Source: Dicyema japonicum (taxonomy: Eukaryota; Animalia; Dicyemida). From it: a stretch of 64,000 bases of DNA. Below are positions 4,641-50,585 of this stretch, piece after piece. The stretch spans positions 92,404-156,403 of the forward strand of contig RDEW01000032.1 in assembly GCA_011109175.1 (NCBI GenBank). The letters run 5' to 3'. A program made the position numbers and the translations under genes. The notes under the pieces were generated by a model. The model was not told the origin of the DNA and did not search any database. It was given only the letters and a program-made list of their open reading frames with translations. Within the stretch, counting starts at the first letter, position 1. Each line of letters begins with the position of its first letter.

Positions 4641-6041
4641 TTGTCGGTGATTTTTGGTTTATAATAATAATTGTTTATTTCGATTCTCGCGTCGTACCAA
4701 GCTGGTCTGTTTACTCGTTTAAAGTAAACTACCATGCTTGATCGCTAAACCCCAAAAGATTTAAACCACCAAATTTCGTTGTGAAATTTGATGATCTCTT
4801 AGAGAGACTTAGCTAGAATTTTCGTTTTCTAATGCTCATCAGTTTGCTATATGTTATCCAAGTTTTGTTCAACGATTTAATTTAATTCACTCTAATGAAA
4901 GACTATTAGTTAAAAGATCAAATAAAATCGTTAATCTATAAATTTAAGAACCATTCAGCCGCCGTCTTAACTCCTTGGCTATTTTTCTCACGACTGCGAG
5001 TGAGATTCGCGCAAAAAGCAAGCAGAATTAATTATATGTTAATAATATTTCTCATTTCGCAGTTGATCTTACATGATTCTGCTATGAAAAATTATCCTAG
5101 GATTTTAATATGTCGCGTGCGCGAAACGCAAATAATATTTAGATAAAACCTAAGTACAAAGAGAAAAGAAGCCCAATTTTAATAGCAAGTGCAATTCAGT
5201 AATTTGGAATCGATTCAATTCGTAGTTACATGAAAAGCTACGTATCAAATGTAAAATGAATCCAATTTTATTTGACGATTCTTTTAGAGCAAGCTTGATC
5301 GAGAAATTAGTCTTCTATTACTAGCAACAGTACAGTTTTTAAGTGGAATCTTCTATCAAAAAGACTTCAATTAACCAATTTTTTCAGTTTAAAAGAAGTG
5401 GTGGTTTCAGTAAAAATGAGTCCAATTTTTGACACAAGCCATCTGTATTGTTCTACGAATTAATTGAGACAGACTCATATTTAAAAATGTTTCATTATGA
5501 TTACATATTTTATTTTATCTGTTTATTTTATTTACCATTTACGATTCTTTATGATTAACTAGAATATGGTAGTTTTTGACTGAACGTAACGCCTGATGAA
5601 ATCAGATCTGACATTCGTGTGTTCCCATTCAAAAGATAGACTTTTCAAACGAAGATCAATTCTCGTAAAATAAATTCCACCCGTTAAGTTATAAGTATTT
5701 CTGATACGACACAGTTGTTGAATGTGGCCATTATGGTAACATAAAAATAATAGTTACAGATTAGATTGTTTTCTTATTTTATTAAGCACATTCAAAAAAG
5801 GGTTAATTCGTTTTAATCTTTACTAAGTTAGATTCAAAAAAAGGGTTAATTCGTTTTAATCTTTATTAAGCTTCATAGCAAAAGAGAAAATTATGGCTGA
5901 AATTAATTTTTTGGTAATTGAAGAGTTCTTAGTCAACTTAGATAGTCACCAATATAATTTATATTTGAATATGACATATATAATACCATTTTCAATATTT
6001 TTGTTAGCAACAATCAATATCAATTCTTCGCTAAAAAAACC

Positions 6042-9000
6042 NCACGCGGACTCGATTTATATTAAAAGTTACTAATATCATAAGTACGTAATTCAATTTC
6101 TCCAGAGACATTACTTTTTGAAGAAAATTCTATTTTTCCTTCTACTTTTTGTTCGATGATTTCATATTTTTTATTACTATCTAGAGGAATGCCATTTACT
6201 GGATCAAAGATAGCTTTTCTTGCTATAGACGCTGTTTCATTTGATAGATTATCTATTGATTCAAGTAATTCAAAAAAATCTTTAACATTTTGACCGTTCT
6301 AATATTATTATTTAAAATCAAAAACCTCATCGGTGTGATTACTTATCAATTTATCTTAGAATTAAAAAAATGACAAACCTGCTAATTTTTCTAATTTATA
6401 ATTAGGTTCGATTATTTTAACAAAGATTTTGAAGTTTGATGAATTTCCTCCATTTAGCAAGTTATTTAAATATTCATTTAGGAAATCATCTCTCGACTTT
6501 AATAAAATATAGGTAGAATTTTCATTTGGTCTTTCACTTTGTAAATATTCAATCATCATTTGAAAATTTATAAACATATTATTTTCATTGATACAATTAT
6601 TTGAGGCAAAATTCTCCACAAAACTTATTTTTTGTGAATCGTTATTAATATTATTAGTTATGATGTTTTGTAATTTGATCATCAATTCTTCTTTTAAGGA
6701 ACCGATCAAAAAGTTCCTAAAATAGACATCAGTAGAATTGAAGGATATTATTAATTCGCAAATAGATGTATGTGAACTTAATAAAAGTTTTGATTTTATA
6801 CCGTCAAAGAAAATATCTCTATCTTCATCATGATTCTATACATTATTAGAATTTTACTTTTTTGTTAAATAAGTATTTTAAATTTCGCAAATAATTTTGT
6901 TCCTCACTAAGTGAAATGATTAATTCTTTGAGACCTATGAATTATTTATATACATACAATAATTAAATTCTTTTATACCTGCACACCAGTTTAAAGTTTC
7001 ATCAATATTTGTATAATTATTTGAAATAGATGCTAATTTTTTAAATTTATACTCGAATTCATTAATTTTAATAAATAATTGAAAGTTTGATTCACTTCCC
7101 CCATTAATCAAAATATTAATATATTCATTAACAAAATAATTATTTGAAATAGATGCTAATTTTTTAAATTTATACTCGAATTCATTAATTTTAATAAATA
7201 ATTGAAAGTTTGATTCACTTCCCCCATTAATCAAAATATTAATATATTCATTAACAAAATCATCAAACGATTTAAATAAAACATCTGTAATATTTTCATT
7301 TGGTTCTTCGTTTCGTAAATGCTCAATTATCATATCAAAATTTATAAACTTATTATTTTCATTTACACAATTTGTATTATATTCTGAATTACCAACAAAA
7401 ATTATTTCTGCTGAATTTATATTTTTTAAATAATTTTCGAAAATAATTTGTAATCTGTTTTTTAATTCCATATTTATGGTATCGTATACAAACTGTTTAA
7501 ATTGGAAATCATTAAAATTAAAGGACATTATTTGGCAAATAGACATTAAGCTCAAAAAAGGTATTGATTTTACATTTTCAAAGATATTATCTCTATTAGC
7601 ATCATTATTCTAAAAATTATGAAAAATTTACTTTTTTGTCATATAAAAATTGTAAATTTTGCAAATAATTTTGTTCCTCACTAAATAAAATGATTAAGCA
7701 TCATTAACCTAAAAATTATGAAAAATTTACTTTTTTGTCATATAAAAATTGTAAATTTTGCAAATAATTTTGTTCCTCACTAAATAAAATGATTAATTCT
7801 TTAAGACCTATAAATTATTTATATACATACATTCATTTAACTTTTTAATACTTACACACCAGTCTAACCCTCCATCAATATCTGTATTATTATTTGAGAT
7901 AAATACTATTTTTTTTAAATTATATCGATAATCAATAACTTTAAGGAAAATATCATGATTTGATTCAGTTCCACCATTAATTATATTATTTAAATACTCG
8001 TCGACAAAATAATTAGTCCATTCAGAAGTTACTAATCTTCTTGATAAATGATAAAATATCATTTTAAAATTTATAAACCTATTATCTTCATCTATACAAT
8101 CAGGATCATAGAAAGAATTATCAACAAAAATTTCAGAATCTTTTCCATTTTCATAATATTTTTCTAATATATATTGCAATCTATTTCTTAATTCTTCTTT
8201 AATGGTATCTTTTAAAAATTTTTTAAAAAAATGATCAGTTATTCTGAAGGCCATTATTTGGCAAATAGACATTTTTAAACTCAAAAAAGGTATTGATTTT
8301 ACAATTTCAAAGAAATTATCTCTATTTGTAGAAGTTATCTAAAATTATTAAAATAAGACTTTGAGGATATATAAGTGATACATATTTGCAAAATAATGTT
8401 GTTCCTGACTAAGTAAAATAATTATTTGATTAAGACCTATGAATAAATTATATACATACAGTAATTAAATTCTCTTATGCCAAGACACCAGTTTAATGTC
8501 TCAATTTGTGTAATATCATTCGAGATAGATGCCATTTTTTTCAATTTATACTCGAAATTAGTAATTTTGACAAAGATTTGGAAGTTTGATTCATTTCCAC
8601 GAATAATTAAATTTTGTATATATTCATTAACAAAATCATATCTTGAATCCAGTAAAATTTCTCTCACATTTTCATTTGGTCTTTCGGATTTCCACGAATA
8701 ATTAAATTTTGTATATATTCATTAACAAAATCATATCTTGAATCCAGTAAAATTTCTCTCACATTTTCATTTGGTCTTTCGATAGTTAAGTGTTTTAGCA
8801 TAATTTCAAAATTTATAAACTTATTATCTTCATTTATACAATCAGGATCATTAGTATAATCATTAACATAAATTAATTTTGTAGAATATGAATTAAAATA
8901 AGTTATTATACTAAATTTAAAATCGTTTCTTAATTCTTCTTTTAGTGTCTCGATTACAACACTCTTCAATCCCATAGTAGTAAAATTGAAAGCAATTATT

Positions 9001-9941
9001 TGGCAAATAGATATCTCTAAACCCAAAAAAGTATTTGATCTTAAAGCGTCATAGAAAATATTTAAATTGGTACTACTTATCTAAAAATAAGGAAAATTTA
9101 ACATGTGTGAATAAGTTATTAATATTTGGCAAATAATTTGGTTCCTGACTAAGTAAAATAATTATCTGATTAAGACCTATAAATAATTTATGTACATACA
9201 GTAATTCAATTTTCTTATGCCAAGACACCAGTTTAGTGTCTCAATATGTGCAACATCATTCGAAGTAGATGCCATTTTTTTCAATTTATACTCGAATTCA
9301 GTAATTCTGACAAAAATTTGGAAGTTTGATTCATCTCCACTAATAATAATATTTTGTATATATTCATTAACAAAATCATATCTCGAATCCAGTAAAATAT
9401 CTGTCATATTTTCATTTGGTCTTTCAATAAGTAAATGCTCAATTATCTCTTGAAAATTTATAATCATATTATTTTCATCTATACAATTAGCATTATTAGC
9501 AATATTAAAATCAAATATTTTGGAATTATTTGGAGATTTAAAACAAATTATTATATAGAATTCTAATTTGTTTCTTAATTCTTCTTTTAGTGTCTCGAAA
9601 AAAAATTTCTTCAATTTTATAGTAGTAAAATTGAAGTTAAGTATTTGGCAAGTAGATATCTCTAAATCCAAAACAGTATATGATTTTATAGTGTCATAGA
9701 AAATATTTGTATTGGTACTACCCATCTAAAAATAAGAAAAATTTAACCTGTATGAATAAGTAATTAATATTTGGCAAATAATTTGGTTCCTGACTTAGTG
9801 AATAGATTAATTGTCTAAAACCTAAGAATAATTTATATATATACATTCATTAAAATTATTTCCTAAACAATTGTGCAATCTCTCATCAATTCTATCATGA
9901 TTTGAAACTTTTATAATATGCAAACAGCAGAAAAAAAGCAT
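6042..9941 (-). CDS. Adhesion-GPCR-family ectodomain gene A: signal peptide + 5 tandem ~195-aa repeats + start of GAIN region (3' part lost at N junction)
   Basis: ATG 9941 (MLFFCCLHIIKVS). Introns 9844-9822, 9747-9726, 9199-9177, 9102-9081, 8459-8437, 8359-8339, 7830-7808, 6957-6935 and 6857-6836 (21-23 nt, GT..AG) link the ORFs in frame. Post-repeat exons (SIARK.IFDPVNGIP.DS) match locus B. Duplications near 7610-7730 and 8593-8781 interrupt the frame as assembled. Confidence 0.8.
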
Positions 9942-9949
9942 TATCGTTA

Positions 9950-10300
9950 ATAATTAATGCGATTGCTTTTTATATAAATGTGAATTATATCGTGGAATTA
10001 TGTTAATTTTTTAGACATAATTTAGCTAGAATATACGAATTGATGATCTAAGAGATCATTACGAGAATTGCAATCCTTGCAATGGATTAACCATGGCGTT
10101 CTTTTTACTCTGAGACCTCATTTTGCTATTAATGAATGACAATCTTAATTGCTGTTATTCTAAATTATCCAATAATTTTTTTCTGAGAGAAAACGCATCT
10201 ATTAAGTTTAAACCTGTTAGATTAATGTATTGATGTGACATCAACCGAAAAAGATAGAAGAAATTATATATGTAGACTATGTTGACCTAATTTCCAAATA
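9950..10300. promoter_or_regulatory. Conserved upstream block shared by both repeat-aGPCR genes (partner 31445-31745)
   Basis: Shared strings such as 'tatatatgtagactatgttgacctaatttccaa' and 'gaatgacaatc.taattgctg.tattct' at equivalent distance 5' of both ATGs. Confidence 0.55.
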
Positions 10301-11049
10301 GAGCGTTTTTGCACTAAAAAGTAACCAGATAATTCATAAAGGTCCTTATAAGATGTTCGATCTGTTTTGGATGCTTCTATATTTAGTTATTTGAAAATAA
10401 ATGATTTTATGACAATTAATAAAAATCAAGAAGTAGGTTGACCCAATTCTTTAATCTGCAATTCAGCAATCATAAATTTCTTGATAAATACTTTTATACT
10501 GTTACTTCGGAAACCAAATTTTCTACCAGAAAATGTAAAATATAATCTAATTGTGTGTCTAAAACATAACAATTTAACCAACTGTTCATTTTTAGGTCAA
10601 CTTTATATAAATATAAGATAAACAATTTAATTGATTTAAAATAATTTTTTTTAGTTTTTTTTTGATTCCCCTAATGATGAAGTTTGTGTGTTCCAGATTC
10701 GTCGGAGGTCGCATGTATTTGTTTCACTTGCTACGATGGTTTAGACGTAAAATAAACTCACTTAACCTTAACTTTTTGTTTTGGATGATCTGGTAAGAGA
10801 CCGTTCGGTTAATATTGAGTAATCTGAATGCTGAGTTGGTGTCCCGGATGACACATTTTTAAATTCACGCTTCTCTATTAAGGTAAGTGATCTTTTTGGT
10901 AAAGAGTGATTTTGTGCAAGGGATGCATCTATTTGGAAATATTTTCAATAAAACAAGTACGAATTTGTTAGAGTATTTAATTTCGACATCAACCAAGTGG
11001 AGATTTTTGAATGCAAAGTCAGAAAAGAACTGTTAAATTTCTTGTTCTA

Positions 11050-27322: not shown

Positions 27323-27823
27323 NNNNNNNNNNNNNNNNNNNNNNNNNNNNNNNNNNNNNNNNNNNNNNNNNNNNNNNNNNNNNNNNNNNNNNNNNNNNNN
27401 NNNNNNNNNNNNNNNNNNNNNNNNNNNNNNNNNNNNNNNNNNNNNNNNNNNNNNNNNNNNNNNNNNNNNNNNNNNNNNNNNNNNNNNNNNNNNNNNNNNN
27501 NNNNNNNNNNNNNNNNNNNNNNNNNNNNNNNNNNNNNNNNNNNNNNNNNNNNNNNNNNNNNNNNNNNNNNNNNNNNNNNNNNNNNNNNNNNNNNNNNNNN
27601 NNNNNNNNNNNNNNNNNNNNNNNNNNNNNNNNNNNNNNNNNNNNNNNNNNNNNNNNNNNNNNNNNNNNNNNNNNNNNNNNNNNNNNNNNNNNNNNNNNNN
27701 NNNNNNNNNNNNNNNNNNNNNNNNNNNNNNNNNNNNNNNNNNNNNNNNNNNNNNNNNNNNNNNNNNNNNNNNNNNNNNNNNNNNNNNNNNNNNNNNNNNN
27801 NNNNNNNNNNNNNNNNNNNNNNN
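27323..27823. other. Assembly gap (501 N)
   Basis: Run of N; single Ns also at 6042 and 13821. Confidence 0.99.
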
Positions 27824-28392
27824 GCAACTTTAATATACGTTTCGTTTAGAATCCAAGCAATAATCCGCTATAAGTTCTGCAATTTCTTGTTGGTTAGCAA
27901 TATGTTTTTCTTTTTCATCTCGTAAAGTCAGTTTTTCTTTGGTAGTTTTCTGATTTGTCCGACAGCTTCATAAAACTTCGCATTGTCCCGTTCCTATCCA
28001 TTTGATTGAAGGTTCAACTCATCTACGAAGAATTGGGTTTGACGATTTATATCGTCATCAGTGTTTTTCACTGTGGAACAATATTGTCATCAATAAGTTA
28101 CTCAAAATAAAAAGTAAATAACTAGAACTCAAAAACAAAAGCTGTTTTTTATTTATCAGCTAACAGAAATGGAAATCATCGGAAAATACAAGATCTGAAC
28201 AAAGAAAGTATCGATGCTTGTGAGATAAGAATACAAATCAAGTCTAAAAAGAAATTAAAAGAACTTAGAAAATCAACTGAAAATAAGTACATGTATATGA
28301 AGATATTTTTATGATTATGTTTAAATGTCAATATATGAACATAGTTAGCAAATAAAAATAAATAAACAAGAATTTTAATAACATTAGTAACA

Positions 28393-31300
28393 TTAATTTG
28401 TGTGAATTGGTCGTCTTGTAAAATTTTGTCTTTTATTGGAAATAAAATTTTTGTAGAAAATATATTTATAAGCTTGAATAAAATAATTTGATTCAGTTAA
28501 GAGTAAATTTCCATTATCATTTTCTAAGGTAAGATCTAGGGCGTTTGTTTGTTGTGCGTTATCATTTATTGGATTTACTTTTTTAGCTAACGTTTGTTTT
28601 AAATTCATAGTATTTAAAAGGAGAATGAACAAACCTTGAAAACTAACGAAGATAATAAAAAAATATTCTAACACCGTGCTAAATCTAACAAAAAATAATA
28701 AAATCCATGGAAGTCCTAAAATATTTTATAAATTTACCTGAAAAAAAAAAAACTGAAAATAAAATTTTGTTTTTAATTGATTTTGTATTTATTGGTGTTT
28801 TAATTTTTATAAATCCACACATCAAAATAATGTATAATATAAAATTTAGAAGCAGACATATTATAATAGGACCAAGCAATCCCAAATAAAAGCCAAGTCC
28901 GGTTATCAAGCATTTCCCTTCGGAATAATAAACATTTTTATTTATCATTAAAATTAAACTGACAATAAAGAGTGGAATACCTAATTACAAATAAAACTAA
29001 TATTAAACCCCAACTAATAACAAATGCTTTGACCTTCAAATATTTGATGTTGACTCCAATTACTTTGTTAAATTTTAAATAATGTACAAATGATATTATG
29101 AACATCCACAAAAATTGAGTCAAAATTCCATAGTGGAGTAAAACTCCAACTATTACGCATTCTATAAAACTTTTCTGTGAAGAATAAATGATTCCAAAAA
29201 TAAACACCATGTTCAACATCAAAATTGATGTTTTCAAATTAAGTAAAAGAATTTGAAAAATAGAATTCTTCAAAAGTCTCAATTAAATAAATAATAGCAA
29301 CCTAAATTTGATTATAAATATAATAAATGAAAATATTATAGCGACTGTGGAGAAAGAAATTCCAATTATTGTAATCACTGTAGTTTCATCATTTTTAATT
29401 TCGGAGTTAGTTATAGGACCCTAACGTGAAAATGATAATTACAAATAGAATTGCAAAACTTGTCAAATGCAGAGATTTACAGATATAAAACAAATCAGCA
29501 ATTTCTATTCTACCCGCATTTTCCCAAAGGCCAGTTTCGTTGTTGTAAAATACACACTTTGGAGTAAACCCCTGTAATTAATATGTTTTGCTACTTTATT
29601 AGTATATTCACTATAATTTGAATGTATTGGAAATTTTAATGATAAAGATTTTATTTCAAACTGAGCGACAATCGAAACTTGAAGCGATTGTGGAGATGTT
29701 CCATTTGTAGGAGTTAATTTGCTTTCATTATGAACAACCACGCGAACTCGATTTATTTATAAAATTACTTTCGGTAGGATCTTCAGTAAGTAATTCGATT
29801 TCTCCAGTAACATTATTTTTTGAAGAAAATTTTGAATTTCTTACCACTATTTTATCGATGACTTCATATTTTAGAATACTATCTGGAGGAATGCCATTCA
29901 CTGGATCAAAAATAACTTTTCTTGCTATAGACGCAGTATCATTTGATAGTTTACTAGTAGATTCAAGTAGTTTATTAAATTTTGCAACAACTTCTTTTTT
30001 CTAAAATTTCATTTAAAATCAAATAACCTCATCGCTGTTATCCGTTTTTATCAAATTATCTTAAAATTAAAAAAAATTTTCCAACCTGCTAAATTTTTGA
30101 ATTCATACTCATATTCGGCAATTTTAACGAAGATTAGAAAGTTTGATTCATTTCCTCCATTAATCAAATTATTTAAATATTCATCCACGAAATAATCTAT
30201 CGACTCAAATAAAATATCTGTAGTATTTTCATTTGGTCTTTTGTTTCGTAAATGCTCAATTAACACTTCAAAATTTATAAACTTATTATTTTCATTTGTA
30301 CAATTAGTATCATTAGCAGAATTACCAACATAACTTAATTCAGAAGAATTTCTATTATTAAAATAATTTTCGATGATATATTGTAATTTTTTTCTTAATT
30401 CTTCTTTAAGGGTCTCGTGTACAATATTCTTTAACTGGATATCAAGAAAATTGAAGGTCATTATTTGGCAAATAGAAACCTGTGAACTCAAAAAAGGTAT
30501 TGATTTTAAATTATCATAGAAAATATCTCTATTTTTATCATTAGTCTAAAAATTATGAAAATCTGACTTTTGTTGCATACAAGTAATTTAAATTTTGCAA
30601 ATAATTTTGTTCCTGACTAAGTGAACTAAGTAATTCTCTAAGACCTATGAATAACTTATATCCATACAATAATTAATTTCTTTAGATCTACACCAGTCAA
30701 ATGCTCCATCGATATTTATGTTATTATTTGAACTACTCGCTATTTTTTTTAATTGATACTTAAATTGAGTAACTTTAACAATGATTTGAAAGTTTGATTC
30801 ACTTCCTTTATTAATCAAATTATTTAAATATTCAATGACAATTTCATATTTCGAATCAATTAACACTGAGTCAAAATAAAAAATTTCATTCGGTCTTTCT
30901 TTACGTACATAATCATTTATCTTTTTAAAATTTATAAAAATATTATTTTCTTTAATACAATTATCATCATTGTTTGAAGATGAATTATCAACAAAAATTA
31001 TTTCAGGAGAATTCCTTTTATTATTATAATAATCTTCCATGACATGTAGTAATCTGTTTTGTAAATCTTTTTTTAAGGTATCGCTTACAATCTTCTTCAA
31101 ATTATTATCAGTAAAATTGAAGGCCATTATTTGGCAAATAGAAACCTGTGAACTCAAAAATGGTATTGTTTTTAAATTATCATGGAAAGTATCTCTATTT
31201 TCATCATTAACCTAAAAATTATGAACTATGAACTTTTGTTTCATACAAGTAATTTAAATTTTGCAAATAATTTGGTTCCTGACTAAGTGAACTAAGTAAT

Positions 31301-31436
31301 TCTTTAAGACCTATGAATAACTTATACACATACAATTATTAAATTCACTTCCAATTGAGCACGATGCAAATTTCTTATCAATTATTTCATCACCATTTGA
31401 AATTTTTAAAATAAGCAACCAACAGAAAAGAATCAT
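28393..31436 (-). CDS. Adhesion GPCR B: signal peptide + 2 novel ~195-aa repeats + GAIN/GPS + 7TM, apparently intact
   Basis: ATG 31436 MILFCWLLILKISNG|DE; 22-28-nt GT..AG introns keep one frame throughout. GPS CVFYNNETGLWENAG...YICKSLHLTSFAILF (29556-29443); secretin-type TM motifs (C..VGVLLHYGILTQFLWMFI, SWGIP, GLPW, SFQGLFI); stop at 28393. Confidence 0.88.
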
Positions 31437-32180
31437 TATCGTTAATAATTTATGGTTTTGTTTTTATATGTAAATGTAAATTATATGCTAATTTTCGTTT
31501 CAAGCATAATTTTAGTAGAAAATACGAATAGAAGGTCAGAGATTTCTTTGCTAAAATTGCGATCCGTGCAATCGATTGATCGGCAGTTCTTTTTTTCGCT
31601 CAGACCTCTTTCTGCTATTTCTGAATGACAATCATAATTGCTGCTATTCTTAATTTCCTCATTAGAGAAGTGATGAAATAAGCGAGAATACTAAAAAAAT
31701 AGAATAATTTATATATGTAGACTATGTTGACCTAATTTCCAATACAGAGCTTCTAACACTCTCATTAAACTCTCTTGCGTTCTCAATAATCAAATTAATG
31801 AAAAGATTACAGATATTTACTTCTAGCTTTACTATACAAAAAACTCTCTAAGGAAATTATGAATTGTCTACTATGTTTGTTATTGACCCTTTAATTACTA
31901 TGTGACCTATTAATTTGCAAAAGTGACGATGATTCTGAATTTCTCAATTTATAATTTTCATTAATTAATGAAAAGATTACAGATATTTAGTTCTTGCTTT
32001 ACTATACAAAAAACTCTCTAAGGAAATTATGAATTGTCTACTATGTTTGTTATTGACCCTTTAATTACTATGTGACATATTAATTTGCAAAAATGACGAT
32101 GATACTGAATTTCTTAATTTATAATTTTCAAGAAAAAACTTCCACGTTTGTGAAATTATTCAACTCTAATCTTTCAATAG

Positions 32181-39200: not shown

Positions 39201-42200
39201 GTTGGATCAACTCCAAAGACAAATGATTCTCAGATTCTACCAATTCTGCCAATTTCAGTCCAAGTTCTGGTTTTTCGTGTTTAATAGTAAGTTCCAGAAG
39301 CTAAGATATAATTTAACCAGTCACGTGGTTTGCAAGGCCTGCCTTGGAAGTAGAAAAATTAATAATCGACATGAAATCCTTCATATCAGGGTGGACTTTC
39401 AACTCGATACTCCTCGTGATGAAGAAGATTCTAAAGTTCTCATTATAGTCCAATATTTTGTCCCCCAGTTCAATGGTCTGGTGGAGACCTACAATCAATA
39501 ATTATTAGAAACCCTGGATTTTTACTTCCCGCCTTATAATTGGGTATAAAATCGGTCCAATTTCATCGGCTTCCAACACTGCCAACGTTTTGCCAAATCG
39601 TACGGCCAATTCAAGGGAAGTGATAAAATTAGAGTCCTTTCAGTGAGGAATTCAAATACCTGTTGTTGTATGAACTCTATCTTTGGATGAATGCCCTTTA
39701 ACCAAGAAATCGAACGCTGTGATGGATCAATCAAGTAAGGGATCAAAATAGCCTTGGAATAAATAGATCATCAACCTGAGATAGCATCAGTCCATTCTCA
39801 TCTAAAGACGTTTCTTGCAAAATTTTGTCACTCTCAGTTCCAATAAAAGAAGAAAAGTTAAACTCTTCAACATCTAAAGAGTCCATCCATGAGTTCAGGC
39901 ATGTTTTTCTCAGTTTTTCATTAGCTGGGGGCAAATAAGTCATATAAGCAGCAGCTAGAAGGGAGTGCATCTCCAACTTCGTAATTTCCTTGTTAATGTC
40001 GTCTATCTGAGTGATCCAACGATCGTTTTCTCCCTGTAATTTATCCATCAGAGTCATAGAAGCCTTGATGACTTTGTCTGACTTTTCGAGCTCTTCTTTT
40101 AGCTTAGAAGTTTCGTGGGTGAATGATTCAAAATTTCGACGAAGACTCAGGATTTTATCATCAACTGTCTCCAATTCTCCCTTGAGAGACTTTAATCTTC
40201 TTTGAGAGGCGTCAATATTCCTGAAATATAGCCCCTGAAATTACCGCTGAAGCTCTTTTTGCTCCTTCATCATGTCTATGATTGATTCGTAGACCTTAGC
40301 GTACTGAATAACCGCCTTCGTCCACTGTGCTAAGGGAGCAGCTGCTAGTGATGCTCGCTTGGCATTCTAGTAAGATTTGATAGGATAAATACATTTTCCG
40401 TGAAGGATTCTGAGCGTTGAGCTACAATCTTTTCGACATTCTTCCAATTTTCAGGGAGGATTTTAGAAATATCAGTCGATATCAAGTCTTCTTTTATCCC
40501 ACGTGTCCCAAGTACTCTAAATTTAGATTACTAATGTATTTACTTCTTCATACTATTCCACGATACATCCTGGATTCCGAGAAGTCGAAGAACACACTCC
40601 AAAATATCTCTAACAACATCAGGAGGGACACGTAAGGATTTTATCTCCGATAAGGAATCACTAGTTATCCCCTTTATTGAGGCGTTAGCCGCTTCAATTG
40701 TAGGCTGTACAGACGCCAGCTTTCTGTCGATTGGTTTTTTCTTTTCCTCAATTTTTTTAGTCTCGTCGACTATAAGGCGTTGTAATTCGGCAATTTCTTC
40801 CCTTTGCTTAGAGGTTTCCTTAGAATTAATCACCCATTCACCTGCATCGTCTGCGTGATGCTATTCAAGGCTTCGTCGGCATTTTTCTGTTTAATAGGAA
40901 GGAGCTTTGACTTTTCAGCAGCTTCTTTCTTCAACTGTTCAACTAATATTTTGGATTCCGAAAGTTTATTCAATCCACTCTAGCAATGAGAGAGAGGAAC
41001 ACCTGTAAACGAGCCAGCTTAGAAGACAAAATATCCTTCTTTTGGTTCAATATCTTATAGTAGGCTTTTATGAAGGTTATATATTTAAAAGGGAATATCT
41101 CAATCCCGTTAGACTGACATAAAAGATGGACATCGTAAAAATTGCCAGTCTCTTTGAAATCCTTAATTTTTGGAAGCACATAGGGCGGTTGAGTTGGGTT
41201 GTTAAGCTGATGAAGCAGATAAGCAGGGATCTGAGGTAAATAAAACTAAGACCTTTCTCATAGTTTCTGTTTTCCAAGATTGTTGCCAGATTACGTTGCA
41301 ATCCGTGAAGAATACGGGATTGTTTTTCAAAATATCCGAGAAATTATCGGCCTTGTCATTCAAAAGTAGAATCACGTGCAAATTCATTCGGACCCCTTAA
41401 AATTAAATGGCAGCAGACTAGTAACGAAGAATTCATGCAGTGAGCCTTCAAAGTTTGCGTCAGAACACGTGTCTTTTAGTGAAGAGATCAACGATTCGAG
41501 TTCTCCCTTTTTATACAAATCAGGAATTTCTCCACAGGCGAGAAAATTGTTGACCATCTCATAAAAGGAGAGACTTTTCAACTGATGGTCCTTCAGTAAG
41601 AGTACTACCTCCTCTCCATCCACACCAGCACATTGTATAGCCTGGAATATCCACAAAGTCAAACCGTTTTTAAATAATCTTTAAAATGCTTCATTCGATA
41701 GTCCCTGTTTATTTTGGGAGTGATAACCTTCATTTGTTGTAGGAAAGAAGTCAAAAGAACTGCAGAAGTTCTTCCAAGTCCACTGCTTCCAATAAAAATT
41801 GCTGACCCACGTGGCTGAGTTAATATACGGTCTAGTCTGACTACATTTTCGATAAAATCATCAATGGGAATAATCCTTATGTCAGTTACCTCACGTGCTG
41901 AGATAACTAAACAAAATACCGTAGTTTTTAAGACCAGTAGAAATTATCAACGATATGTCCTCACTAGTGACTTCTGTGAGACCCTTCAAGTTGTTTGGTG
42001 ACTGGCTTAGAGAAGTGAAGATTACTAAAAATAAAAAGCTCAGCAACCATCAGTCAAGTCAGTCAAAGAATAATCCCAGTTGGATTTTATTTTCGCGCTT
42101 AAAATTCCGTTAAATTTTAATAGCAAATCAGAATCGCCTATTCGGTCCCGGAATGATCTCAAAATTTCGTTCACCAAGATTTTCAAAATCTAAGTTCAAA

Positions 42201-45200
42201 TCGGGTTCATTACATATTTCTGGTTTGATTTGCCGTCAAAATAATATTTTTCTAACCCGCAGATAATTGACTGATATTTTTAGAATTTATCGCAAATCGA
42301 GAAACTTCAACGTTAAAAGTGTTTTTCAGCTACAATTAACTTAAACTCAACTTCAAAGAAAAATTCAACCAAAAAATCGGTCAATTGGAAAATTTTGCTT
42401 TCAGAAACTTCAGTAGGACTAACAGATTTACTTTTCAGGACCGAAGACAAAAGGATAGAAAATATCTTTTTCATTTCGTGCTCATCAAGAGGCCTTGGAG
42501 TAAACAAGACAATTCTTACTCAATGTAGCAAATAGGGATCTCCGAAGTGAACCTGTCTGACAGCTGGTATCTCCCAGGCGCTGATTCTCCCGTAATCGCA
42601 CAGACAAACTGAATTCCTTCCAATAAGACAAATTCAAGGTTGGAATCATAAAATCCATTATAAGTGAAGACCTTGAATAAATATTAAATAGACTTGTTGA
42701 AGAAATGATATCAGTTGGGTGGTACCCCATTTATCAGGCTTACAAAAGTCGACATTTTTAAGATAGAAAACAATCCTCTCGCAATCCTTTGGCTTATACA
42801 CCCTTCCAGTTGTCGTCGTCATTATAATACAAAACTGGGAAAGACGTTGTATTATGTGCTCCGGGCTGGTTTGAGTACTGCAGTATAGAGTAGTCATGAA
42901 AACAGATCTCAGATCACTACAACACTTATTTAGCATTAATCTGCAGGTTTTATTAAAAATTACGTTTTTCCGCTCCCAGAAGGCCCTACCAGTATAAAGT
43001 TGTGTAAATTATAAGAATTCAGGTATTTTTTGAAGAATCCTATCTTTCGCTGTGCGGATGCAGTGTTTATAAAAGGAACAGTTAATGTACCGACGAAGTC
43101 TTCATCGATCTAAAATATATTTGGAGAAGACTAACATTATCTATGTATGGTTTAAGGTTTTTCCCATCAAAGTAATAATTGGTTGGATCCCCTGAAGGTT
43201 CTGGCTCTCCAATCAGCTCGTAAACCTTAAATAGGCTGAAATTAACATACATGTTTGGCAAGACGTTGACGGTAAATTTTATCGCCGTTACTACCGAATC
43301 CGTGAATCAAGGCAATTCCGAACTCAGTCAAAGCGTCAACTCCTTTCAAATTGGATAAGCCGTTGTTAACAAATCCCACTGTACTGACCTCAATAACTAA
43401 CTTCCTCTTAAAATCCCATAAAATGAACTTACATGTTCAAAAGACCACTGAAGGACTTTATAAAAATAATCTTTTATCCATTCTGACAAATTTTCATTAT
43501 CAGAAGAGAACCGTCTGATCCATGAAGTCAGAGAGAATCAACATTGACGGATTCATCACTAAATAAAAAAAGTTTAAAACCTAATATAAACAACCCCCAA
43601 ACGTGAGATTGTTGCTGGTGAAGCATTTCCAAGGTGATGAGTCTCGAAAATGAAATTTACGTTGTTCCCAAATTTTAGTCTTTCTCCAGAAGGTAAGGTT
43701 AGCAGATGATTGTCATCAAGTACCGAATTCAACGATTCAATCCATTCAGGATCAATATCGCCGTCACAGACAACAAAGGAAAAGACATCGGCTGATTCCT
43801 TAACGACCTGACGTGCAGCATATGTTATGATCCCATCAGTCCATTCCCTTGTGTCATAATCTATACTTCCCAACAGCTACAAAGTTAATCATTTTCTTAC
43901 CTGTGCCTTCGATATAGCTTTTGGGTTCATCGTATAAAGTCTTACTGTCTTGTTAGCTTTAATTAGAGCACTTCTCAGTATTTTCCATAAGGTTGATTTC
44001 CCTGATCCACTGGGACCGAATATGACCACTCCGATTCGTTGTTGAATTTGTTCATAAAGCTCAAATACTTTCTGAATCTAAATACGTGTTTCTTAGGAAC
44101 GACCTGTTTGGGGGACTCTGTAAGGTTCATTTCTCTGTAGCTTTGCTTAATAAAGTCATAGAGATAATTTTCGAATGTGTTTGATAACTGAATATCCTGG
44201 AAAACACTTTTGATTAAGTCGTCGAATATTAGCGAGTCGTAATGAGTTAGCTTTGAAAGAGTATTGATCCTTAAAGCCTTTACTACAATATCAAATTCAT
44301 CGGTTTTTTTATTTTCTAAATAAATTTATATTTTGAACCACTTTGGATCATTCTACCCGAGCTTTTCAAAACAGTCTTTAATGCTCGAAGTCCCCAGTCA
44401 TAGTGTTGTTGGGAGGTTAGTAAATCCCTAAAAATTAGGCTTCTAGTACTTGGCTGCTGAAAAAATTGAGACGAGCTTTTTTCCTATGGCCTTTGCTTCA
44501 GTAAATCCCTCGGAGAATAAAATAACTTCTGCAATAAGTTCATTGTCTGGTTTAGACATGACGACCGGACGGAATAGCTGCTTCAAATTATCAGGCAGTT
44601 TCTGACGACCTCCATATCCTTTACAGGCAGGATTCAGCGTGATAAAAATATTGGAGTTGAAATTTACACTAATCTGTTAGATAAATTATTCGACTGACAT
44701 TTCTTCCGAGAAGTTGGACGGTTTTATGTCGAAATTTAACCGCCTGCTGGATGATTTGAATGTGCATAGAAAGGATTGAAAGAACAGACTCTTCCAGGCG
44801 GTTAAATTCATCAAAGCATCCCCAAGCACCGCATTTTAAGAGACCGACGAAAATCCTCTCCATTGACTTTACATCGATTCCCTAATCATTATAAAAAGCT
44901 AAGTGACCTCATCACAGTTAAAGACAAGAACTTGTCTTCCTAAAATAGCGCCGAGAGCTTTAACCGACTCCGTTTTGCCCGTTCCGGCAGGTCCATACGG
45001 ATTTCCTCCCAATCCAGATACCATGGCTATGATTTATACAAAATAATGTGAACCCTGAGTTAGAGTGAGAAAGCATTTGTCCGTGAGTGGGGTATGAACC
45101 AGTTTCGGGGTATTTCCCTGATATTCGTATGAGTAATTTATATTAGAGTCCACCATCTTATAAAATATATCGCCCTTGTCAGAATAAGCTCTATTTGTGT

Positions 45201-48200
45201 TTAACACTGAGCATACCGAATTTGCTTCTGCCAATTCCAGTCGTTAATTCCACGGACTTTATCACTAATCAGCTGAGTGACCAGATTCATATTATGAACA
45301 CTGTCGAGAATGCAGTCTTTCAATTTTAGAATCAGGACTTGATCTTTGATCTTAGTTTTCTGCGCATCGCAGTAGTTTTTCAGTTGATTCTGAACTTCCC
45401 TTTTGAGCCCTTCTAGTGATCCTCCCATTATAGCCTTCTCACATTTCGCAGTAAACTGGATTGCCTCAACAAGGGAGAGGATCTTGGCTACAATCACTGA
45501 TTTACCTGCGCCGGGTAGTCATTCGGATTTATTTGACGAGTCTTATACTGCTTAATAGCATCATTCGCGAGATTTGATAGAGTTTTTACCATTTCTTTGG
45601 ATAATTTCATTAGCCAGTCCTTTAGTCAGAAACAGACAAACTTCAATTGAGTTTGTGATAGTAATTGGACAGGTCAAAGTGACTCGTTCACCTTCCAATG
45701 ATTGGATGGCAGTAATCATGTCTTGTTTTTCGTTAAATTCCACGGAATAAATTCCAGCAAATAACTTGTTGAGGTGATCTTGGATGACTGAGGGTTTTGT
45801 CGATTGGCCAATGATCTCTAGTAAATTTTCATCCCCAATAAAATAAAATCTTGGAAAATTTAATCGTTTCTCCTTAGAATTAAAGACTAAATAAACTTCG
45901 AGGTAATCATTCAAGGCTTTTTGACAGCGATAAAGCTGATCAGAAGCATTCTCTAGCTGAGTTTGGATGCCGGATCTGTTTAATAAAGAAACAACTCGAT
46001 TATCCCCATATATATCGCCCAAAATAACCCTAAAGTCAATTAGCGTAAAAACTTGAAGTCGTTGTTTGTTTTATTGAATCTTGACTGCTGAGGGAGACAA
46101 CCCTTCCCAAATATGGGCTCTAAGTGAACCCATTTTCTTTGAACAGTATTGAGCACATGCAGCAAAATATCCAACTGTCCCAGTTTTTGCTCCCAAACTG
46201 AGATTTTGTCTTCAAATAGATTATAATAAAGGAGTTCTTTGAGTGATTGGACCATCAGCTGGTTGTCTCCAATCTGAAATTAGATAAAAATCTTACGCAT
46301 GTCAGCAGTTCCTTCCACTCTTTTATGATAGATACGATTGAGTTGTCTGTTGTGGTGTAATTTGTCAAAAAAAGCGTGCAACTCAATCTCCAAATGTCAA
46401 GTTACCTCAAAGCTATTCTTATGGTAACCTCTCCTTTGGCTTTTTTGCTGAGTTCCTGTAAAATGAATGTTTTCAGAACCTTCAAATTCTCAATTTGGTA
46501 CAAAATTTAATTTGTGCTGTTTATATGGTCTCCGAGTAAAGGTTTTTGAATTGTCATGTCTTTCGTGAGTTTTATGAGGGTAAACAGCTCAATCCATAGA
46601 TCAATGTCATGTCTTCTCCAACAAACCATTTAAAGTATGGAATCGATTACTAAAATCCTAGAAAATACTACAAACTTTTAATTTGTCAATTTTCTTGGTT
46701 AATTTGATATTTACTGCCGACTTCTTCTCTTTAGCTTGTCGTTTACTCCACGAGTCGATTAGATCGGCAAATTCATCAGGATTTGTCCTATATATTAATT
46801 CGACAACCAAACCTGAATGAAATTCAATCTTCAGATTCCAATTTCTCCATTTCGAAAGATAATTCCAGTACTGTCTTCCAATTTAACTGTTTTTTACTAA
46901 TTCTTGCAACGGTAGTATCGATTTCTGGTCGAAGCGAATCCTTCATGTCATGAGATTTAAAATTTCGTTTTTGTATCGAAATTGAAAGAATTACATCAAA
47001 GATTTTAATTCCGCTAATATTTCGTTAAAATCTCTTTTCTGGTTGATTATTTGAACAGCCTTTGCTCTGAGTTGTGCGAGATCACAGTCCAAATGGAAAT
47101 CCTTAGGCATTAAATGCTTCCATCTGGATTTCAATTTTAGATTTTTTGTTATTAAGGATAATATCGGTCGACCAATTTTTTTAATAATTTTGAATGTTGA
47201 TTTAAATGTGTCAAATTTACTTGATTTTTCAACATTTTATCAAAGTTTGTTAACGTCTCATCAAATTTTTCAAATTTACTCCTTGCCGTGGTCACTGCTG
47301 ATATTCCCTTTCCGGCAACAATTTTCAACAGTTTATTCTTTCTTTCAACAAAATTTATCTCATTTCGCAACTGCGGCTAAGTATTACAGAATCTTACCGA
47401 ATCGCACTCTTTAATCCATTCCTTATGTTTCTTCGAATATTGAGCAACCTCGTCTGAATTTTGTGGCTTCTTTTCTAGCGAGGCTCGAGCCGGCTGAAAG
47501 ATTGTCACTAAATTTTTTATTTGTCGCGTGAATTGACTGCGACAAGGAAGAAACCAAAGCTTCAAAATATCTCTCCAGCAAGTCATCAATGCTTGCCTTC
47601 ATTAAAATTGTATTTATAAGAATACAGTCCACTTTAATCTCACTTGAATTAAAAACTGATAAACTTTTGAATTCTTTCAGCTTCCCGCCCTTTAGTTTTC
47701 AATTCGCGGAAATTTTCTTCAAATTCTGAAATTTCTGAGACGTTTTGATTCACAAATTCTTGCAGATCGACAGTGCTGAGTACAAACCAAGGCTGGGAAT
47801 TAATAAATCTCAGACTCTAAAATCTTGAATAATCTCCCCAAGTTTAGCGAAAATAACTTGTACTTTGTAATATACGTATTTTAATCTCTCAACGTTTAAA
47901 TATATCATTTTTAGAAAAATTTGGTTTGGCTTTCCCCCACTGACTCCCCAAAAATGTTTTGGGAGCATTATAAATTTCTTTATCTCATTTATAAAAGCCA
48001 CTCTAATTTCTTCTTAAGACAGTTTGAATTGAAGCTTATTTTGTCTAAAGTAAGTCAGTTCGCAGCCGGAAGATCAAATCCGCTTTAACAGTGGGAAAAT
48101 CATTATGGAACATTTCAAGCCCAGTCTGAAACTGAAATTCAAAAGCTTTGTATAACTGAGGGTCCCAGTGGTTCCTCCAACCTCTCATATCTTCGGGGGA

Positions 48201-50585
48201 GTATCCCTGGATATATATTTGATTCTACCTGAGCTTCTACTGAGGAAAATATCTGACGAATAATGACCATCTCACTCTTCCACTTCTCTTGGCTTCTTAG
48301 TAAATCCACATTAAATAAGTTGACCACCTATTAGTGAGTGGAATTGAGATCAACCTTATCAATTAGTTGCACGTGGATGGACCTGAGGTGTCTATTTTCC
48401 TGCGAGAGGCGTTCAGAAATATCCTTCAGTTTCTTTACGTAAGTATCGAGGTCTCTTGTGTTTTCCCACGTTAGTTCCACGTGTCCACCTATTTGTTAGC
48501 CTTAATTACACCTTGACTTTGATTGCGGACTATTTTTTCAAACGCATGTGCAGTACAAATCATTAGTGGTTTCTGACTGGCAATCATTTGGCGGTCAATA
48601 GAATTGTAGAAATGGGCGACTTTCCTCAGGGATATTCCGTAGTTGTAGTATTTATTGCCTTCGTTGACAATATCCACTATTTTTGAAGGAATTTCAAATC
48701 CCAAAGCCGAAAGATGCCGGACCTCTTCTATGAGAACCACCAGTTCATCGCTGTAGCTTACAGTTAATTTATCATTTTTATAATCCATCGTCATTATTTT
48801 ACCAGTAATGATCAATCTGGTAATTAAGGCAAAAATCACTTGCTGTCGTACAAATTGGCTCGATTTATCACGTCCTCGCACCAGTCGTTGTACTGGTCAA
48901 GTTTCAAGGTGCTTAGTTGAGATTGTAAGTCATTCAACGTCGTAATAAACTCAGAAAAGCCGTTAATTTCCCTCAAAATAGAATTTCCAATACTGATATA
49001 TTCGTTGACCTAAAATTAATACATATTCTTGCTTTATGTTGCTTCTGAATAATCCACGTAATGTAGTTGATAAACTGGGATCTATGAATTATCTGAGGAG
49101 GATCTTTTCTATTGGCGATGACGTCATAAAATTCTTCCTTTAGCTGCCTCACATGAATTTTGAGCTGAGCAAATAGACTTTCTCTAAGAACGTTAATCAT
49201 TCCAAACCTTTCGTCAATCAACCTATCCTTGATTTGGGGCTTAGCGAGCAGATCTCTAAATTGTACGATGTGGCTCAAAAACTTATGTTAGAACATAACA
49301 ACAAACCTGGTTCGGATTTTTGTTGAATTTTGTAAAATATTTCTTCAAATTTTCAACACAATCAGGAAGCAATTTCTCAATAATCTTATTGTACTGAACT
49401 AGAGCTTTTTTCCATTCAGAAAGAGAATATAAATTCGACTGAAAAGCGTTAACATCTTTAATTAACTACTTGCATACGTTTAAATGATTTGAAAATATCT
49501 TCATCACCACAAAAACCTGAACTGTTATTCCCGGCAATTTTTATTAATTGTTCGCCACATATTTTAATATTTTTAATCTAATTAAATTAACAATAATTTA
49601 CCTCTTCAATTCTTTTAGTTAATTCTATCATCATATAAGGTTTAAATTCAGTGCCTTTCCATGTATGAGAGGCTAATCTTGGCCAAAAGTTTTTAGTCTG
49701 GGATGTGCACAATTCTCCAAACCGTCCAGTGATTTTTTCGGTTTCTACAAGAATTTCAATTGCTTTGGAAAACGGGAGATCCCAAATGTTTTCTTTTGCC
49801 AATAATACTTGCAGTTGAGTAGAAATTGAGCTGTCAAATACAAGCAAAAAATGCTCCATTCGCTCTTCGGGATAAGGTTGGGTCTCATTTTGTTTCCACA
49901 AATCATCAAGGACGTCAAAACATACTTCAATAACTTCTTCAAAGTCCGAGATCTCTAATCCTTCCATTTCACTCAATTGCCTTCTCAGAGGCTCAAATAA
50001 TCGTCCGTAAACTTTTCCTTTGAGAGATTCAGATTTGTCCGATTTTGAAATCACGAGACTCCAATATTCGAATTCATCATTTGGAGTTAAAATATCTTAA
50101 TATTGAAAAAAAAGTACAGCTGTAGTTATGACCCCCTGAAGTTGATCTCTTAAGCCAATTTTGAAGTCCGGAATCAAGTTGGGTTAAAATATTTTGAAGA
50201 GTCGAATCGATTTTTATTTTGTTCGAATTTAATAAAGGACCGTATAACTGATGAATTGCATAGTAGAAAGACTTCTCGGGAGAAGACGTCAATGATGTCA
50301 TCAAAATTTTATTTCGCACGTTCTTATCCTCAAATACTGGAATTTTAAAAAAGGCCAAAGTATTTTTAGCTGATTTTTCTTCGCTAAGCTAAATTATACA
50401 ATCAAATGTTGTTTTACTTTGAGACTCATCGCTACTGTATTCGATTCTTTCTGGCAATACAAAATAGCACTTGTCTCGCTCAAAAATTGTAATATAACAT
50501 TCAGGTTTTCTTGATTTAGTGAATTTTCTGGACAATTGAAATAATTTGTTGCTGTGGAAAATATAGAGTCCTTATTTTCTTCCAT
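36254..50585 (-). pseudogene. DYNC2H1: Cytoplasmic dynein-2 heavy chain (retrograde IFT motor), full length, disrupted
   Basis: ATG 50585 to TAG 36254. Dynein-2-type segments ([77 protein letters not shown]) joined by dozens of 21-29-nt introns. In-frame stops at 48014-16, 46824-26, 46507-09, 46402-04; frameshifts near 47490, 46600, 43530, 42253, 38725. Confidence 0.88.

Follow-up and report, generated by a model that had tools for sequence, protein, structure and literature searches.

Does the minus-strand locus at 31436-28393 of a 64,000-nucleotide stretch of the Dicyema japonicum genome (contig RDEW01000032.1, positions 92,404 to 156,403; the whole stretch is hereafter referred to as the window) encode a complete adhesion GPCR, and is the ectodomain of this receptor assembled from a module peculiar to its lineage? 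The question is of interest for animals such as dicyemids, which consist of about 30 cells and have no nervous system. The analysis presented here leads us to regard the locus as, most likely, an intact and lineage-specific adhesion GPCR gene (class B2), with a proposed cleavage and tethered-agonist mechanism and an ectodomain that appears, from sequence comparison, to evolve fast.

Gene structure

A shortest-path search over GT..AG introns resolved the locus (28393-31436) into a single frame of 919 codons plus stop, distributed over 13 exons and obtained by the removal of 12 predicted GT-AG introns of 22-28 nt, which runs from an ATG at 31436 to a stop codon at 28395-28393. The frame opens with a signal-peptide-like N-terminus (31392-31436, aa 1-15), read by eye from its core (ILFCWLLILKI), the small residues at positions -3 and -1 and the sequence S-N-G↓D (arrows denote cleavage), and it closes with a cytoplasmic tail of ~70-73 aa and the stop codon (28393-28614). 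The elements that the original prediction had placed in one spliced frame, namely a signal peptide, two repeats, a GPS, a 7TM domain and a short tail, were all recovered at their predicted positions. The exon-intron details of that prediction stood as far as the frame is concerned and needed small corrections elsewhere: intron 1 is better read as 23 nt (31333-31311), and reading intron 11 as 28 nt (29008-28981) regains the conserved SWG-IP of TM4. Intron 1, a GT-AG intron, is 91% identical to intron 3 (30645-30667, 23 nt); the same gene model yields introns 2 (31212-31233, 22 nt), 4 (30546-30567, 22 nt) and 8 (29572-29594, 23 nt). Micro-introns are confined to D. japonicum and to myxobolid myxozoans (PMC13644364).

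GC content is ~34% in the window and ~25% in the DNA of the receptor locus. A random frame of 181 codons at ~25% GC is expected to contain ~16 stops, and hence the open frame is beyond chance. Elsewhere in the window there are dynein heavy-chain exons, and N gaps occur in its sequence.

Four sequencing runs from one 2019 sample, all listed as RNA, include the locus. When aligned to the window, their contigs cross the introns unspliced, cover intergenic DNA and show a joint at no intron. These data thus look genomic in type.

Receptor identity and the proteolysis site

The 7TM domain (28615-29378, aa 617-846) was delimited by Pfam 7tm_2, PDB matches and hydropathy, and contains introns 10 (29301-29278), 11 and 12 (28737-28716). 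Against a 7tm_2 cut-off of 20.6 bits, two of its exons score 21.8 and 23.1 bits, their matches following each other in collinear order on the profile (positions 37-116 and 127-196), and hydropathy analysis detects seven membrane-spanning stretches within aa 614-851. In a PDB comparison, the TM2-TM4 exon can be aligned over its full length with TM2-TM4 of adhesion GPCRs, with ADGRG4 in first place (7e-6) and a range that extends to 7e-4. The best matches of the TM exons are ADGRG4/G6/G5/G2, L2/L3, D1 and G1; those of TM4-6 and TM7 are ADGRL2, ADGRG1 and ADGRL3, and for the TM7 exon no matches other than ADGRG1, L2 and L3 were found. Matches with E < 0.05 are exclusively ADGR receptors, B1 receptors being absent from the matches listed. 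The domain also retains a set of hallmark residues: the TM3-ECL2 Cys pair, LHY in TM3, WG-P in TM4, GLPW (W6.53) in TM6 and FQG in TM7.

Directly N-terminal to TM1, the GPS exon (29443-29571, aa 560-602) matches Pfam GPS along its entire length (profile positions 1-45 of 45) with 33.6 bits (E 5.7e-8), 11 bits over the cut-off of 22.5. The H-L↓T-S-F sequence predicted at 29469-29455 is encoded exactly there, with the cleavage triad H594-L595↓T596 at 29469-29461 and the putative cleavage site 20 residues ahead of TM1. The putative tethered agonist and its linker to TM1 (29379-29463, aa 596-616), which are interrupted by intron 9 (29421-29442, 22 nt), begin with TSFAILF. This peptide fits the TxFxxLM agonist consensus at six of seven positions; T, F and L agree, and a hydrophobic F is found where M is expected. 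Both the consensus and the definition of the HL↓T site are taken from PMC13197933. A phmmer search of the PDB with the GPS exon (43 aa) returned designed PPR repeats as its top, spurious match, and ADGRD1 with an E-value of 0.63. Taken together, the GPS with its HL↓T site, the TSFAILF peptide resembling a Stachel and a 7tm_2 domain that is closest, among solved structures, to ADGRG/L/D receptors bear out, at the level of sequence, the claim of a complete adhesion GPCR.

The segment between the last repeat and the GPS is less clear-cut. This GAIN-like spacer (29595-30000, aa 432-559), interrupted by intron 7 (29747-29768, 22 nt), is named by position and size only. In both respects it agrees with the ~140-aa GAIN-like segment that had been proposed, but a Pfam scan of single exons recognized nothing as GAIN upstream of the GPS, that is, outside the last 45 residues. 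Over its first 77 aa it shares 64% identity with a paralogous exon at 6298-6068, and an ESM Atlas query with these 77 aa (the GAIN-N exon) retrieved composition-driven neighbors alone.

The canonical GPS comprises four Cys and two aromatic residues (CxC-x-HL↓T); the full set is typical, but family membership is possible without it, and its completeness bears on cleavage. Two of the four Cys are present here (C565 and C590), Y stands for the first W and the second W is kept, and cleavage is therefore not assured. The same receptor could thus have a degenerate GPS and rely on allosteric, 'non-dissociative' Stachel signaling, or act chiefly as an adhesion molecule, and in this regard the lack of a Pfam GAIN match and the fact that some family members, B2 and B3 among them, remain uncleaved although their fold is intact (PMC13197933) are to be considered. 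Nonetheless, neither the catalytic H-L-T triad nor the hydrophobic core of the Stachel is disrupted, and the GPS model clears its cut-off comfortably, so that we deem a receptor unable to cleave itself unlikely.

For the self-cleaving receptor that we favor, analogy with the known family suggests the following mechanism. The membrane-proximal region, which spans four exons, would fold as a GAIN domain in which subdomain A is short or absent, and self-cleavage would take place in the ER, at the L595-T596 bond, leaving an N-terminal fragment with two orphan domains held on non-covalently. A ligand or a mechanical pull acting on the orphan domains might then expose the tethered agonist, which would dock in the 7TM core and switch on a G protein.

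The ectodomain repeat and its paralogs

The putative N-terminal fragment carries two repeat units. Unit 1 (30705-31373, aa 22-229), established by tblastn and alignments, consists of a Cys loop, a 77-nt mini-exon and a 544-nt main exon, and contains four Cys; unit 2 (30087-30704, aa 230-420) was delimited by alignment to unit 1. Every unit is split by two micro-introns that flank the mini-exon. Identity amounts to 54-56% between the two units and to 42-63% between either of them and five further copies located at 6.4-9.8 kb. AlphaFold models the main exon of unit 1 as all-alpha (pLDDT 67) and unit 2 as eight helices with a small hairpin (pLDDT 81, pTM 0.80).

A profile built from the seven copies found a single, spurious match (26 residues, E 8.5e-4) among 1.84 billion (1.84e9) representative proteins, and a Pfam scan of the repeat revealed no family above noise. 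Fold searches with both models in the PDB, AFDB and the ESM Atlas produced no match: the best Foldseek hits in the PDB have E-values of 0.64-1.0 and TM scores of ~0.2, the best VIA-align hits (Z 5.2-5.5) are unrelated proteins, and an ESM Atlas query with the repeat exon yielded feature scores of at most 0.89, for bacterial and phage proteins of similar composition. Hence, the repeat is a Cys-containing, predicted helical bundle with no detectable relative outside this genome, either in sequence or in predicted fold. The lineage-specific character originally attributed to it is supported by these searches, as neither the 1.84e9-protein profile search nor Pfam brought to light a widespread or already described version of the same repeat.

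A possible identity considered for the repeat was GAIN subdomain A, which is the sole all-helical module usual in adhesion-GPCR ectodomains. Both are helical and extracellular, and the last repeat, like subdomain A, adjoins the N-terminal side of the beta-rich segment that bears the GPS. The repeat is nevertheless larger (~200 aa, eight helices and a hairpin, four Cys) and occurs in tandem two to five times. The identification was rejected, given that Foldseek and VIA-align listed no GAIN entry for either model and that Pfam reports no GAIN match.

The five further copies belong to a second gene on the minus strand (5946-9941), in agreement with the prediction that the same repeat would recur in the window. 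This paralogous locus has the same signal-peptide-like start as the receptor, at 9941, followed by the repeats, a linker micro-exon and a GAIN-N-like exon, and its homology to the receptor ends near 6040. It contains internal duplications, and neither a GPS nor a 7TM domain was found when both were looked for in it.

Whether the two loci represent a variable surface-receptor family, as had been proposed, is a more delicate matter. In favor of variability are the different numbers of repeats (two and five), an omega of ~0.6, a preponderance of protein-changing read variants (21 of 30) and contigs whose repeat variants do not occur in the window; against it, the second locus lacks GPS and 7TM, and omega, being below 1, gives no sign of positive selection. 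The sequence data thus point only weakly to such a family, and a role of it in host recognition is hypothetical. The ends of read contigs encode repeat variants not found in the window, which hints at further variants elsewhere in the genome. Along with these variants, three other leads suggest a bolder reading: in each of the four runs, summed contig depth is 8-12 times higher for the 7TM than for the repeats; some sequences look like mosaics of the two loci; and a 5' block has been homogenized between units 1 and 2. According to this reading, dicyemids may possess a multigene or hyper-allelic receptor system that binds through the orphan helical Cys-domain, and in which many copies with near-identical GPS and 7TM would carry ectodomains that vary in repeat number and sequence and whose segments recombine. 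We hold this reading to be doubtful, but, if it were true, such a system would amount to a diversified sensor of host or partner surfaces in an animal with almost no other GPCRs.

Selection and gene integrity

Pairwise NG86 estimates of dN/dS range from 0.5 to 1.5, and the GAIN-N exon gives about 1-1.2 between receptor and paralog. Since NG86 is distorted by the extreme AT bias, its values near 1 were treated with caution; the maximum-likelihood estimate for the repeats under a GY+F3X4 codon model is 0.58. In simulations of neutral evolution, 10% substitution introduces 3-5 stops per repeat exon, with a probability of remaining open of 0.01-0.03 for each. All seven repeat copies are open at pairwise divergences of 18-35%, and this is indicative of selection for coding. 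The 30 read variants in the coding sequence comprise 21 non-synonymous and 9 synonymous changes, and no stops. The ectodomain evolves fast under weak constraint, with its frame held open by selection, a pattern consistent with a binding surface that faces a changing partner, be it host tissue, other parasite cells or matrix.

High omega values and a truncated neighboring paralog also leave room for relaxed constraint in a decaying family, and the receptor gene could in that case be silent or recently dead, its first stop codon yet to arise. The NG86 estimates (about 1.2 for the GAIN-N exon between loci), the excess of non-synonymous read variants, the internally duplicated paralog devoid of GPS and 7TM and the absence of any transcript among the genomic-type contigs are all in line with this scenario. 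Conversely, 919 codons are open at ~25% GC, 12 GT-AG introns are intact, the 7TM signature residues are all kept, the maximum-likelihood omega is below 1, and neutral drift simulated at the observed divergence closes every repeat exon. A dead gene is thus quite improbable. A mis-joined model, in which the repeat exons would form a separate gene for a secreted protein and the GPS and 7TM exons the next gene downstream, is scarcely credible: the paralog demonstrates that a repeat-only product without 7TM can exist, and exon joining is read here from genomic sequence, but between the two parts there is neither a stop nor a gap nor a restart led by an ATG, a GPS/7TM gene beginning at 30000 would have no signal peptide, and the frame runs through a 32-nt linker micro-exon (30028-30059) and two introns that are kept in the paralog, which itself continues into the GAIN-N exon. 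Indeed, the whole junction from last repeat through micro-exon to GAIN-N exon, with its three introns, is preserved in the paralog (6.0-6.9 kb), where intron 5 (30060-30085, 26 nt) has a counterpart at the same position (6378-6355) and intron 6 (30001-30027, 27 nt) one of 89% identity (6325-6299), and this argues for repeats and GAIN on one transcript.

Discussion

An intact adhesion GPCR with an orphan ectodomain, the reading that we favor, acquires significance from the small GPCR repertoire of dicyemids. Dicyema sp. has been credited with four secretin-family (PF00002) proteins and two rhodopsin-type GPCRs (Zverkov et al. 2019, PMC6543705), and the gene analyzed here probably belongs to that PF00002 set or is an ortholog of one of its members. 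In so nearly empty a repertoire, the retained receptors naturally suggest themselves as candidate sensors of the cephalopod kidney and mediators of signaling between stages. The published work gives a Pfam count only, in which architecture, GPS, repeats and paralogs are undescribed; a literature search found no paper pairing Dicyema with adhesion GPCRs, and the supplements of two D. japonicum papers have no 7tm_2 or GPS entries as text. The receptor gene thus supplies a concrete architecture for one dicyemid PF00002-type receptor, together with a putative cleavage site and agonist peptide. What is new, as judged from sequence and predicted fold, is an undescribed ectodomain module on an adhesion GPCR; small and well defined, this orphan domain lends itself to structure determination and ligand fishing. 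Adhesion-GPCR research gains a further case of a conserved GAIN/7TM chassis joined to a module invented within one lineage, in which the GAIN may be very short.

Among known systems, the closest are the solved CTF structures of ADGRG4/G6/G5/G2, followed by ADGRL3 and ADGRD1, with which the Dicyema receptor shares HL↓T within its GPS, a Stachel of the TxFxxLM type, W6.53 and the QG motif of TM7. Sequence identity to these receptors is low, and a subfamily is not assignable from it. As to differences, the ectodomain has none of the ADGRG/L/D modules (PTX/LamG, CUB, SEA, HormR, RBL, OLF), the GPS has two Cys whereas the solved adhesion GPCRs have four, and the pre-GPS region spans ~175 aa, as compared with ~320 aa for a full GAIN. 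A parallel is offered by those invertebrate adhesion GPCRs that belong to none of the nine vertebrate subfamilies (Scholz et al. 2019, PMC6900090), which also combine the GPS and 7TM chassis with ectodomains that have no vertebrate counterpart. With respect to these receptors, the Dicyema module stands out as one with no detectable relative, rather than as a known domain reshuffled.

Gene structure and family membership of the receptor

The region holding the receptor gene, on the minus strand at 31436-28393, is AT-rich (25-26% GC, vs ~34% in the whole window), and its minus strand contains long open stretches in alternating frames. A shortest-path search with introns restricted to GT..AG and 17-44 nt yielded a single path. 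It starts with the ATG at 31436, ends with the stop codon at 28395-28393 and remains open once 12 GT..AG introns are removed, which bears out the original prediction of a single continuous spliced frame. Two introns were subsequently refined by hand: intron 1 was set to 23 nt, matching its counterpart in repeat 2, and intron 11 to 28 nt, which regained the 'SWG-IP' of TM4. In the final model, 919 codons are distributed over 13 exons and the introns measure 22-28 nt, a size range known from no animals other than Dicyema japonicum and myxobolid myxozoans (PMC13644364); published values for the D. japonicum genome are 36.7% GC and a mean intron of 38 bp (PMC6736024). A 501-N assembly gap lies at 27323-27823, 570 nt downstream of the stop codon, and very high contig depth at 27850-27985 probably marks a repeat element there. 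Elsewhere in the window, dynein heavy chain exons occupy 39743-50054 on the minus strand (Pfam DHC_N1, DHC_N2 and MT stalk).

Membership of the predicted protein in the adhesion GPCR family is well supported by several converging features. Pfam GPS aligns along its full length with the exon at 29571-29443 (33.6 bits, cut-off 22.5), which encodes H-L-T-S-F at 29469-29455, exactly where it had been placed. This GPS is non-canonical, retaining only two of the four cysteines typical of the motif and carrying Y in place of the first conserved aromatic. Directly after the predicted L595/T596 cut comes TSFAILF, which is consistent with the TxFxxLM core of the tethered agonist (2026 IUPHAR review, PMC13197933), and TM1 starts 20 residues past the cut site. 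The predicted 7TM region was likewise recovered. Two TM exons separately pass the Pfam cut-off for 7tm_2 at consecutive profile positions, and comparison with all PDB sequences yields collinear matches for the TM2-4 exon (ADGRG4, G6, G5, G2, L3 and D1; best E 7e-6), the TM4-6 exon (ADGRL2) and the TM7 exon (ADGRG1, L2 and L3). Direct reading identifies the usual landmarks, namely one cysteine in ECL2 and one at the top of TM3, LHY in TM3, GLPW in TM6 (W6.53) and FQG in TM7, and hydropathy delineates seven segments.

The segment proposed ahead of the GPS is GAIN-like in position and size. The stretch from the last repeat to the cut site, spread over four exons, departs from the canon in measuring ~175 aa, roughly what GAIN subdomain B would occupy by itself, and a Pfam scan of the pre-GPS stretch did not recognise GAIN.

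An orphan repeat in the ectodomain

The receptor ectodomain, with 13 N-glycosylation sequons in total, carries two units of the repeat (31373-30705 and 30704-30087), each composed of a short Cys loop, a mini-exon of 77 nt between introns of 23 and 22 nt, and a main exon of 460-544 nt, with four cysteines per unit. Within the window, tblastn locates seven copies that are 42-63% identical, two in the receptor gene and five at 9.8-6.4 kb. AlphaFold models, which rest on these seven paralogous sequences from one genome only, are all-helical at moderate confidence for repeat 1 (pLDDT 67) and show eight helices plus a small hairpin at good confidence for repeat 2 (pLDDT 81, pTM 0.80), the helix order being alike in both.

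Searches for relatives in sequence and fold returned none, in keeping with the earlier proposal that the repeat is lineage-specific and novel. A HMMER profile built from the seven main exons had a sole match among 1.84 billion representative proteins, spanning 26 residues (E 8.5e-4) and unrelated on inspection, and Pfam returned only noise. For both repeat models, Foldseek gave E >= 0.64 and TM ~0.2 on PDB; AFDB clusters gave E >= 0.17, and the ESM Atlas TM <= 0.50 with partial overlaps only. The Foldseek-independent VIA-align reached a best Z of 5.2-5.5 across 48,161 chains, which is less than the background usually seen with helical proteins. No structure-match list contains a GAIN domain, so these searches lend no support to reading the repeat as a multiplied GAIN subdomain A.

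A five-repeat paralog and possible further family members

The five additional copies belong to a paralog at 9941-5946 on the minus strand, comprising a putative signal peptide similar to that of the receptor, the five repeats, a linker micro-exon and the first GAIN-like exon, which is 64% identical to its counterpart in the receptor gene. Three introns and the 32-nt linker micro-exon of the receptor gene are kept in position and sequence, and this conservation argues that repeats and GAIN part would lie on one transcript. Similarity ends ~15 nt past the next intron (near 6040, next to an isolated N at 6042) and the frame runs on for another 33 codons before it closes; no further GPS or 7TM lies in the window. 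The paralog also harbors an in-frame tandem duplication of 41 aa (~7230-7036), an out-of-frame duplication of ~30 aa (~8790-8600) and a duplicated mini-exon (7814-7620), all on the minus strand. Either it encodes a secreted protein made of repeats only, or it is a truncated copy.

Contigs from four sequencing runs cross the receptor introns unspliced and cover the flanks, and hence are genomic data. In all four runs the summed contig depth of the GPS/7TM part (28530-29480) is 8-12x that of the repeats (30026-31385), a measure not equal to copy number, and at several GPS/7TM sites the entire depth (100%) disagrees with the assembly. Both observations suggest many genomic copies or alleles with 7TM regions within 5% and ectodomains diverging more. 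Other contigs match the receptor gene to 30011, 30349 and 30681 and then run into repeat-like or GAIN-like coding sequence absent from the window (one end encodes D-F-Q-I-F-V-N-N-S, another A-L-N-W-C-L-S-T). Logan contigs can be chimeric where words are shared, and the depth and the contig ends are leads only to further family members or divergent alleles, and to variants beyond those in the window. Two other contig ends match the paralog locus. One of them leaves the upstream region of the receptor gene at 31742 and matches the paralog upstream at 10298-10327 with one mismatch, which points either to paralogous promoters or to the existence of mosaic copies.

Evidence of function and rapid change

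Indirect evidence favours a functional receptor gene. Pairwise nucleotide divergence between repeats is 18-35%, and neutral simulation at only 10% substitution introduces 3-5 stops per repeat exon, with only 1-3% of trials keeping an exon open. All seven repeat exons are nevertheless open, the 30 read variants inside the receptor coding sequence include no stop, and GT-AG is kept at 12 of 12 introns, three of which are the ones conserved in the paralog along with the linker micro-exon. For the repeats, NG86 dN/dS is 0.5-1.5 and a maximum likelihood codon model allowing for AT bias gives an omega of 0.58 (kappa 1.7). Together with 21 non-synonymous vs 9 synonymous read variants in the coding sequence, we take these values to show weak average constraint and fast amino-acid change, and not as a demonstration of positive selection. 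The intron/mini-exon/intron block is 93% identical in DNA between units 1 (31333-31212) and 2 (30667-30546), as opposed to 73-82% in the adjoining main exons, which suggests local gene conversion between both units.

Comparison with known adhesion GPCRs

A link between Dicyema and adhesion GPCRs was not found in our literature search, and host recognition by the receptor is put forward as a candidate reading. Ectodomains unrelated to vertebrate subfamilies are common among invertebrate adhesion GPCRs (PMC6900090), and a published Pfam count lists four PF00002 proteins in Dicyema sp. (PMC6543705). Hence the receptor has an ordinary chassis, and its novelty is the ectodomain module and the behaviour of that module.
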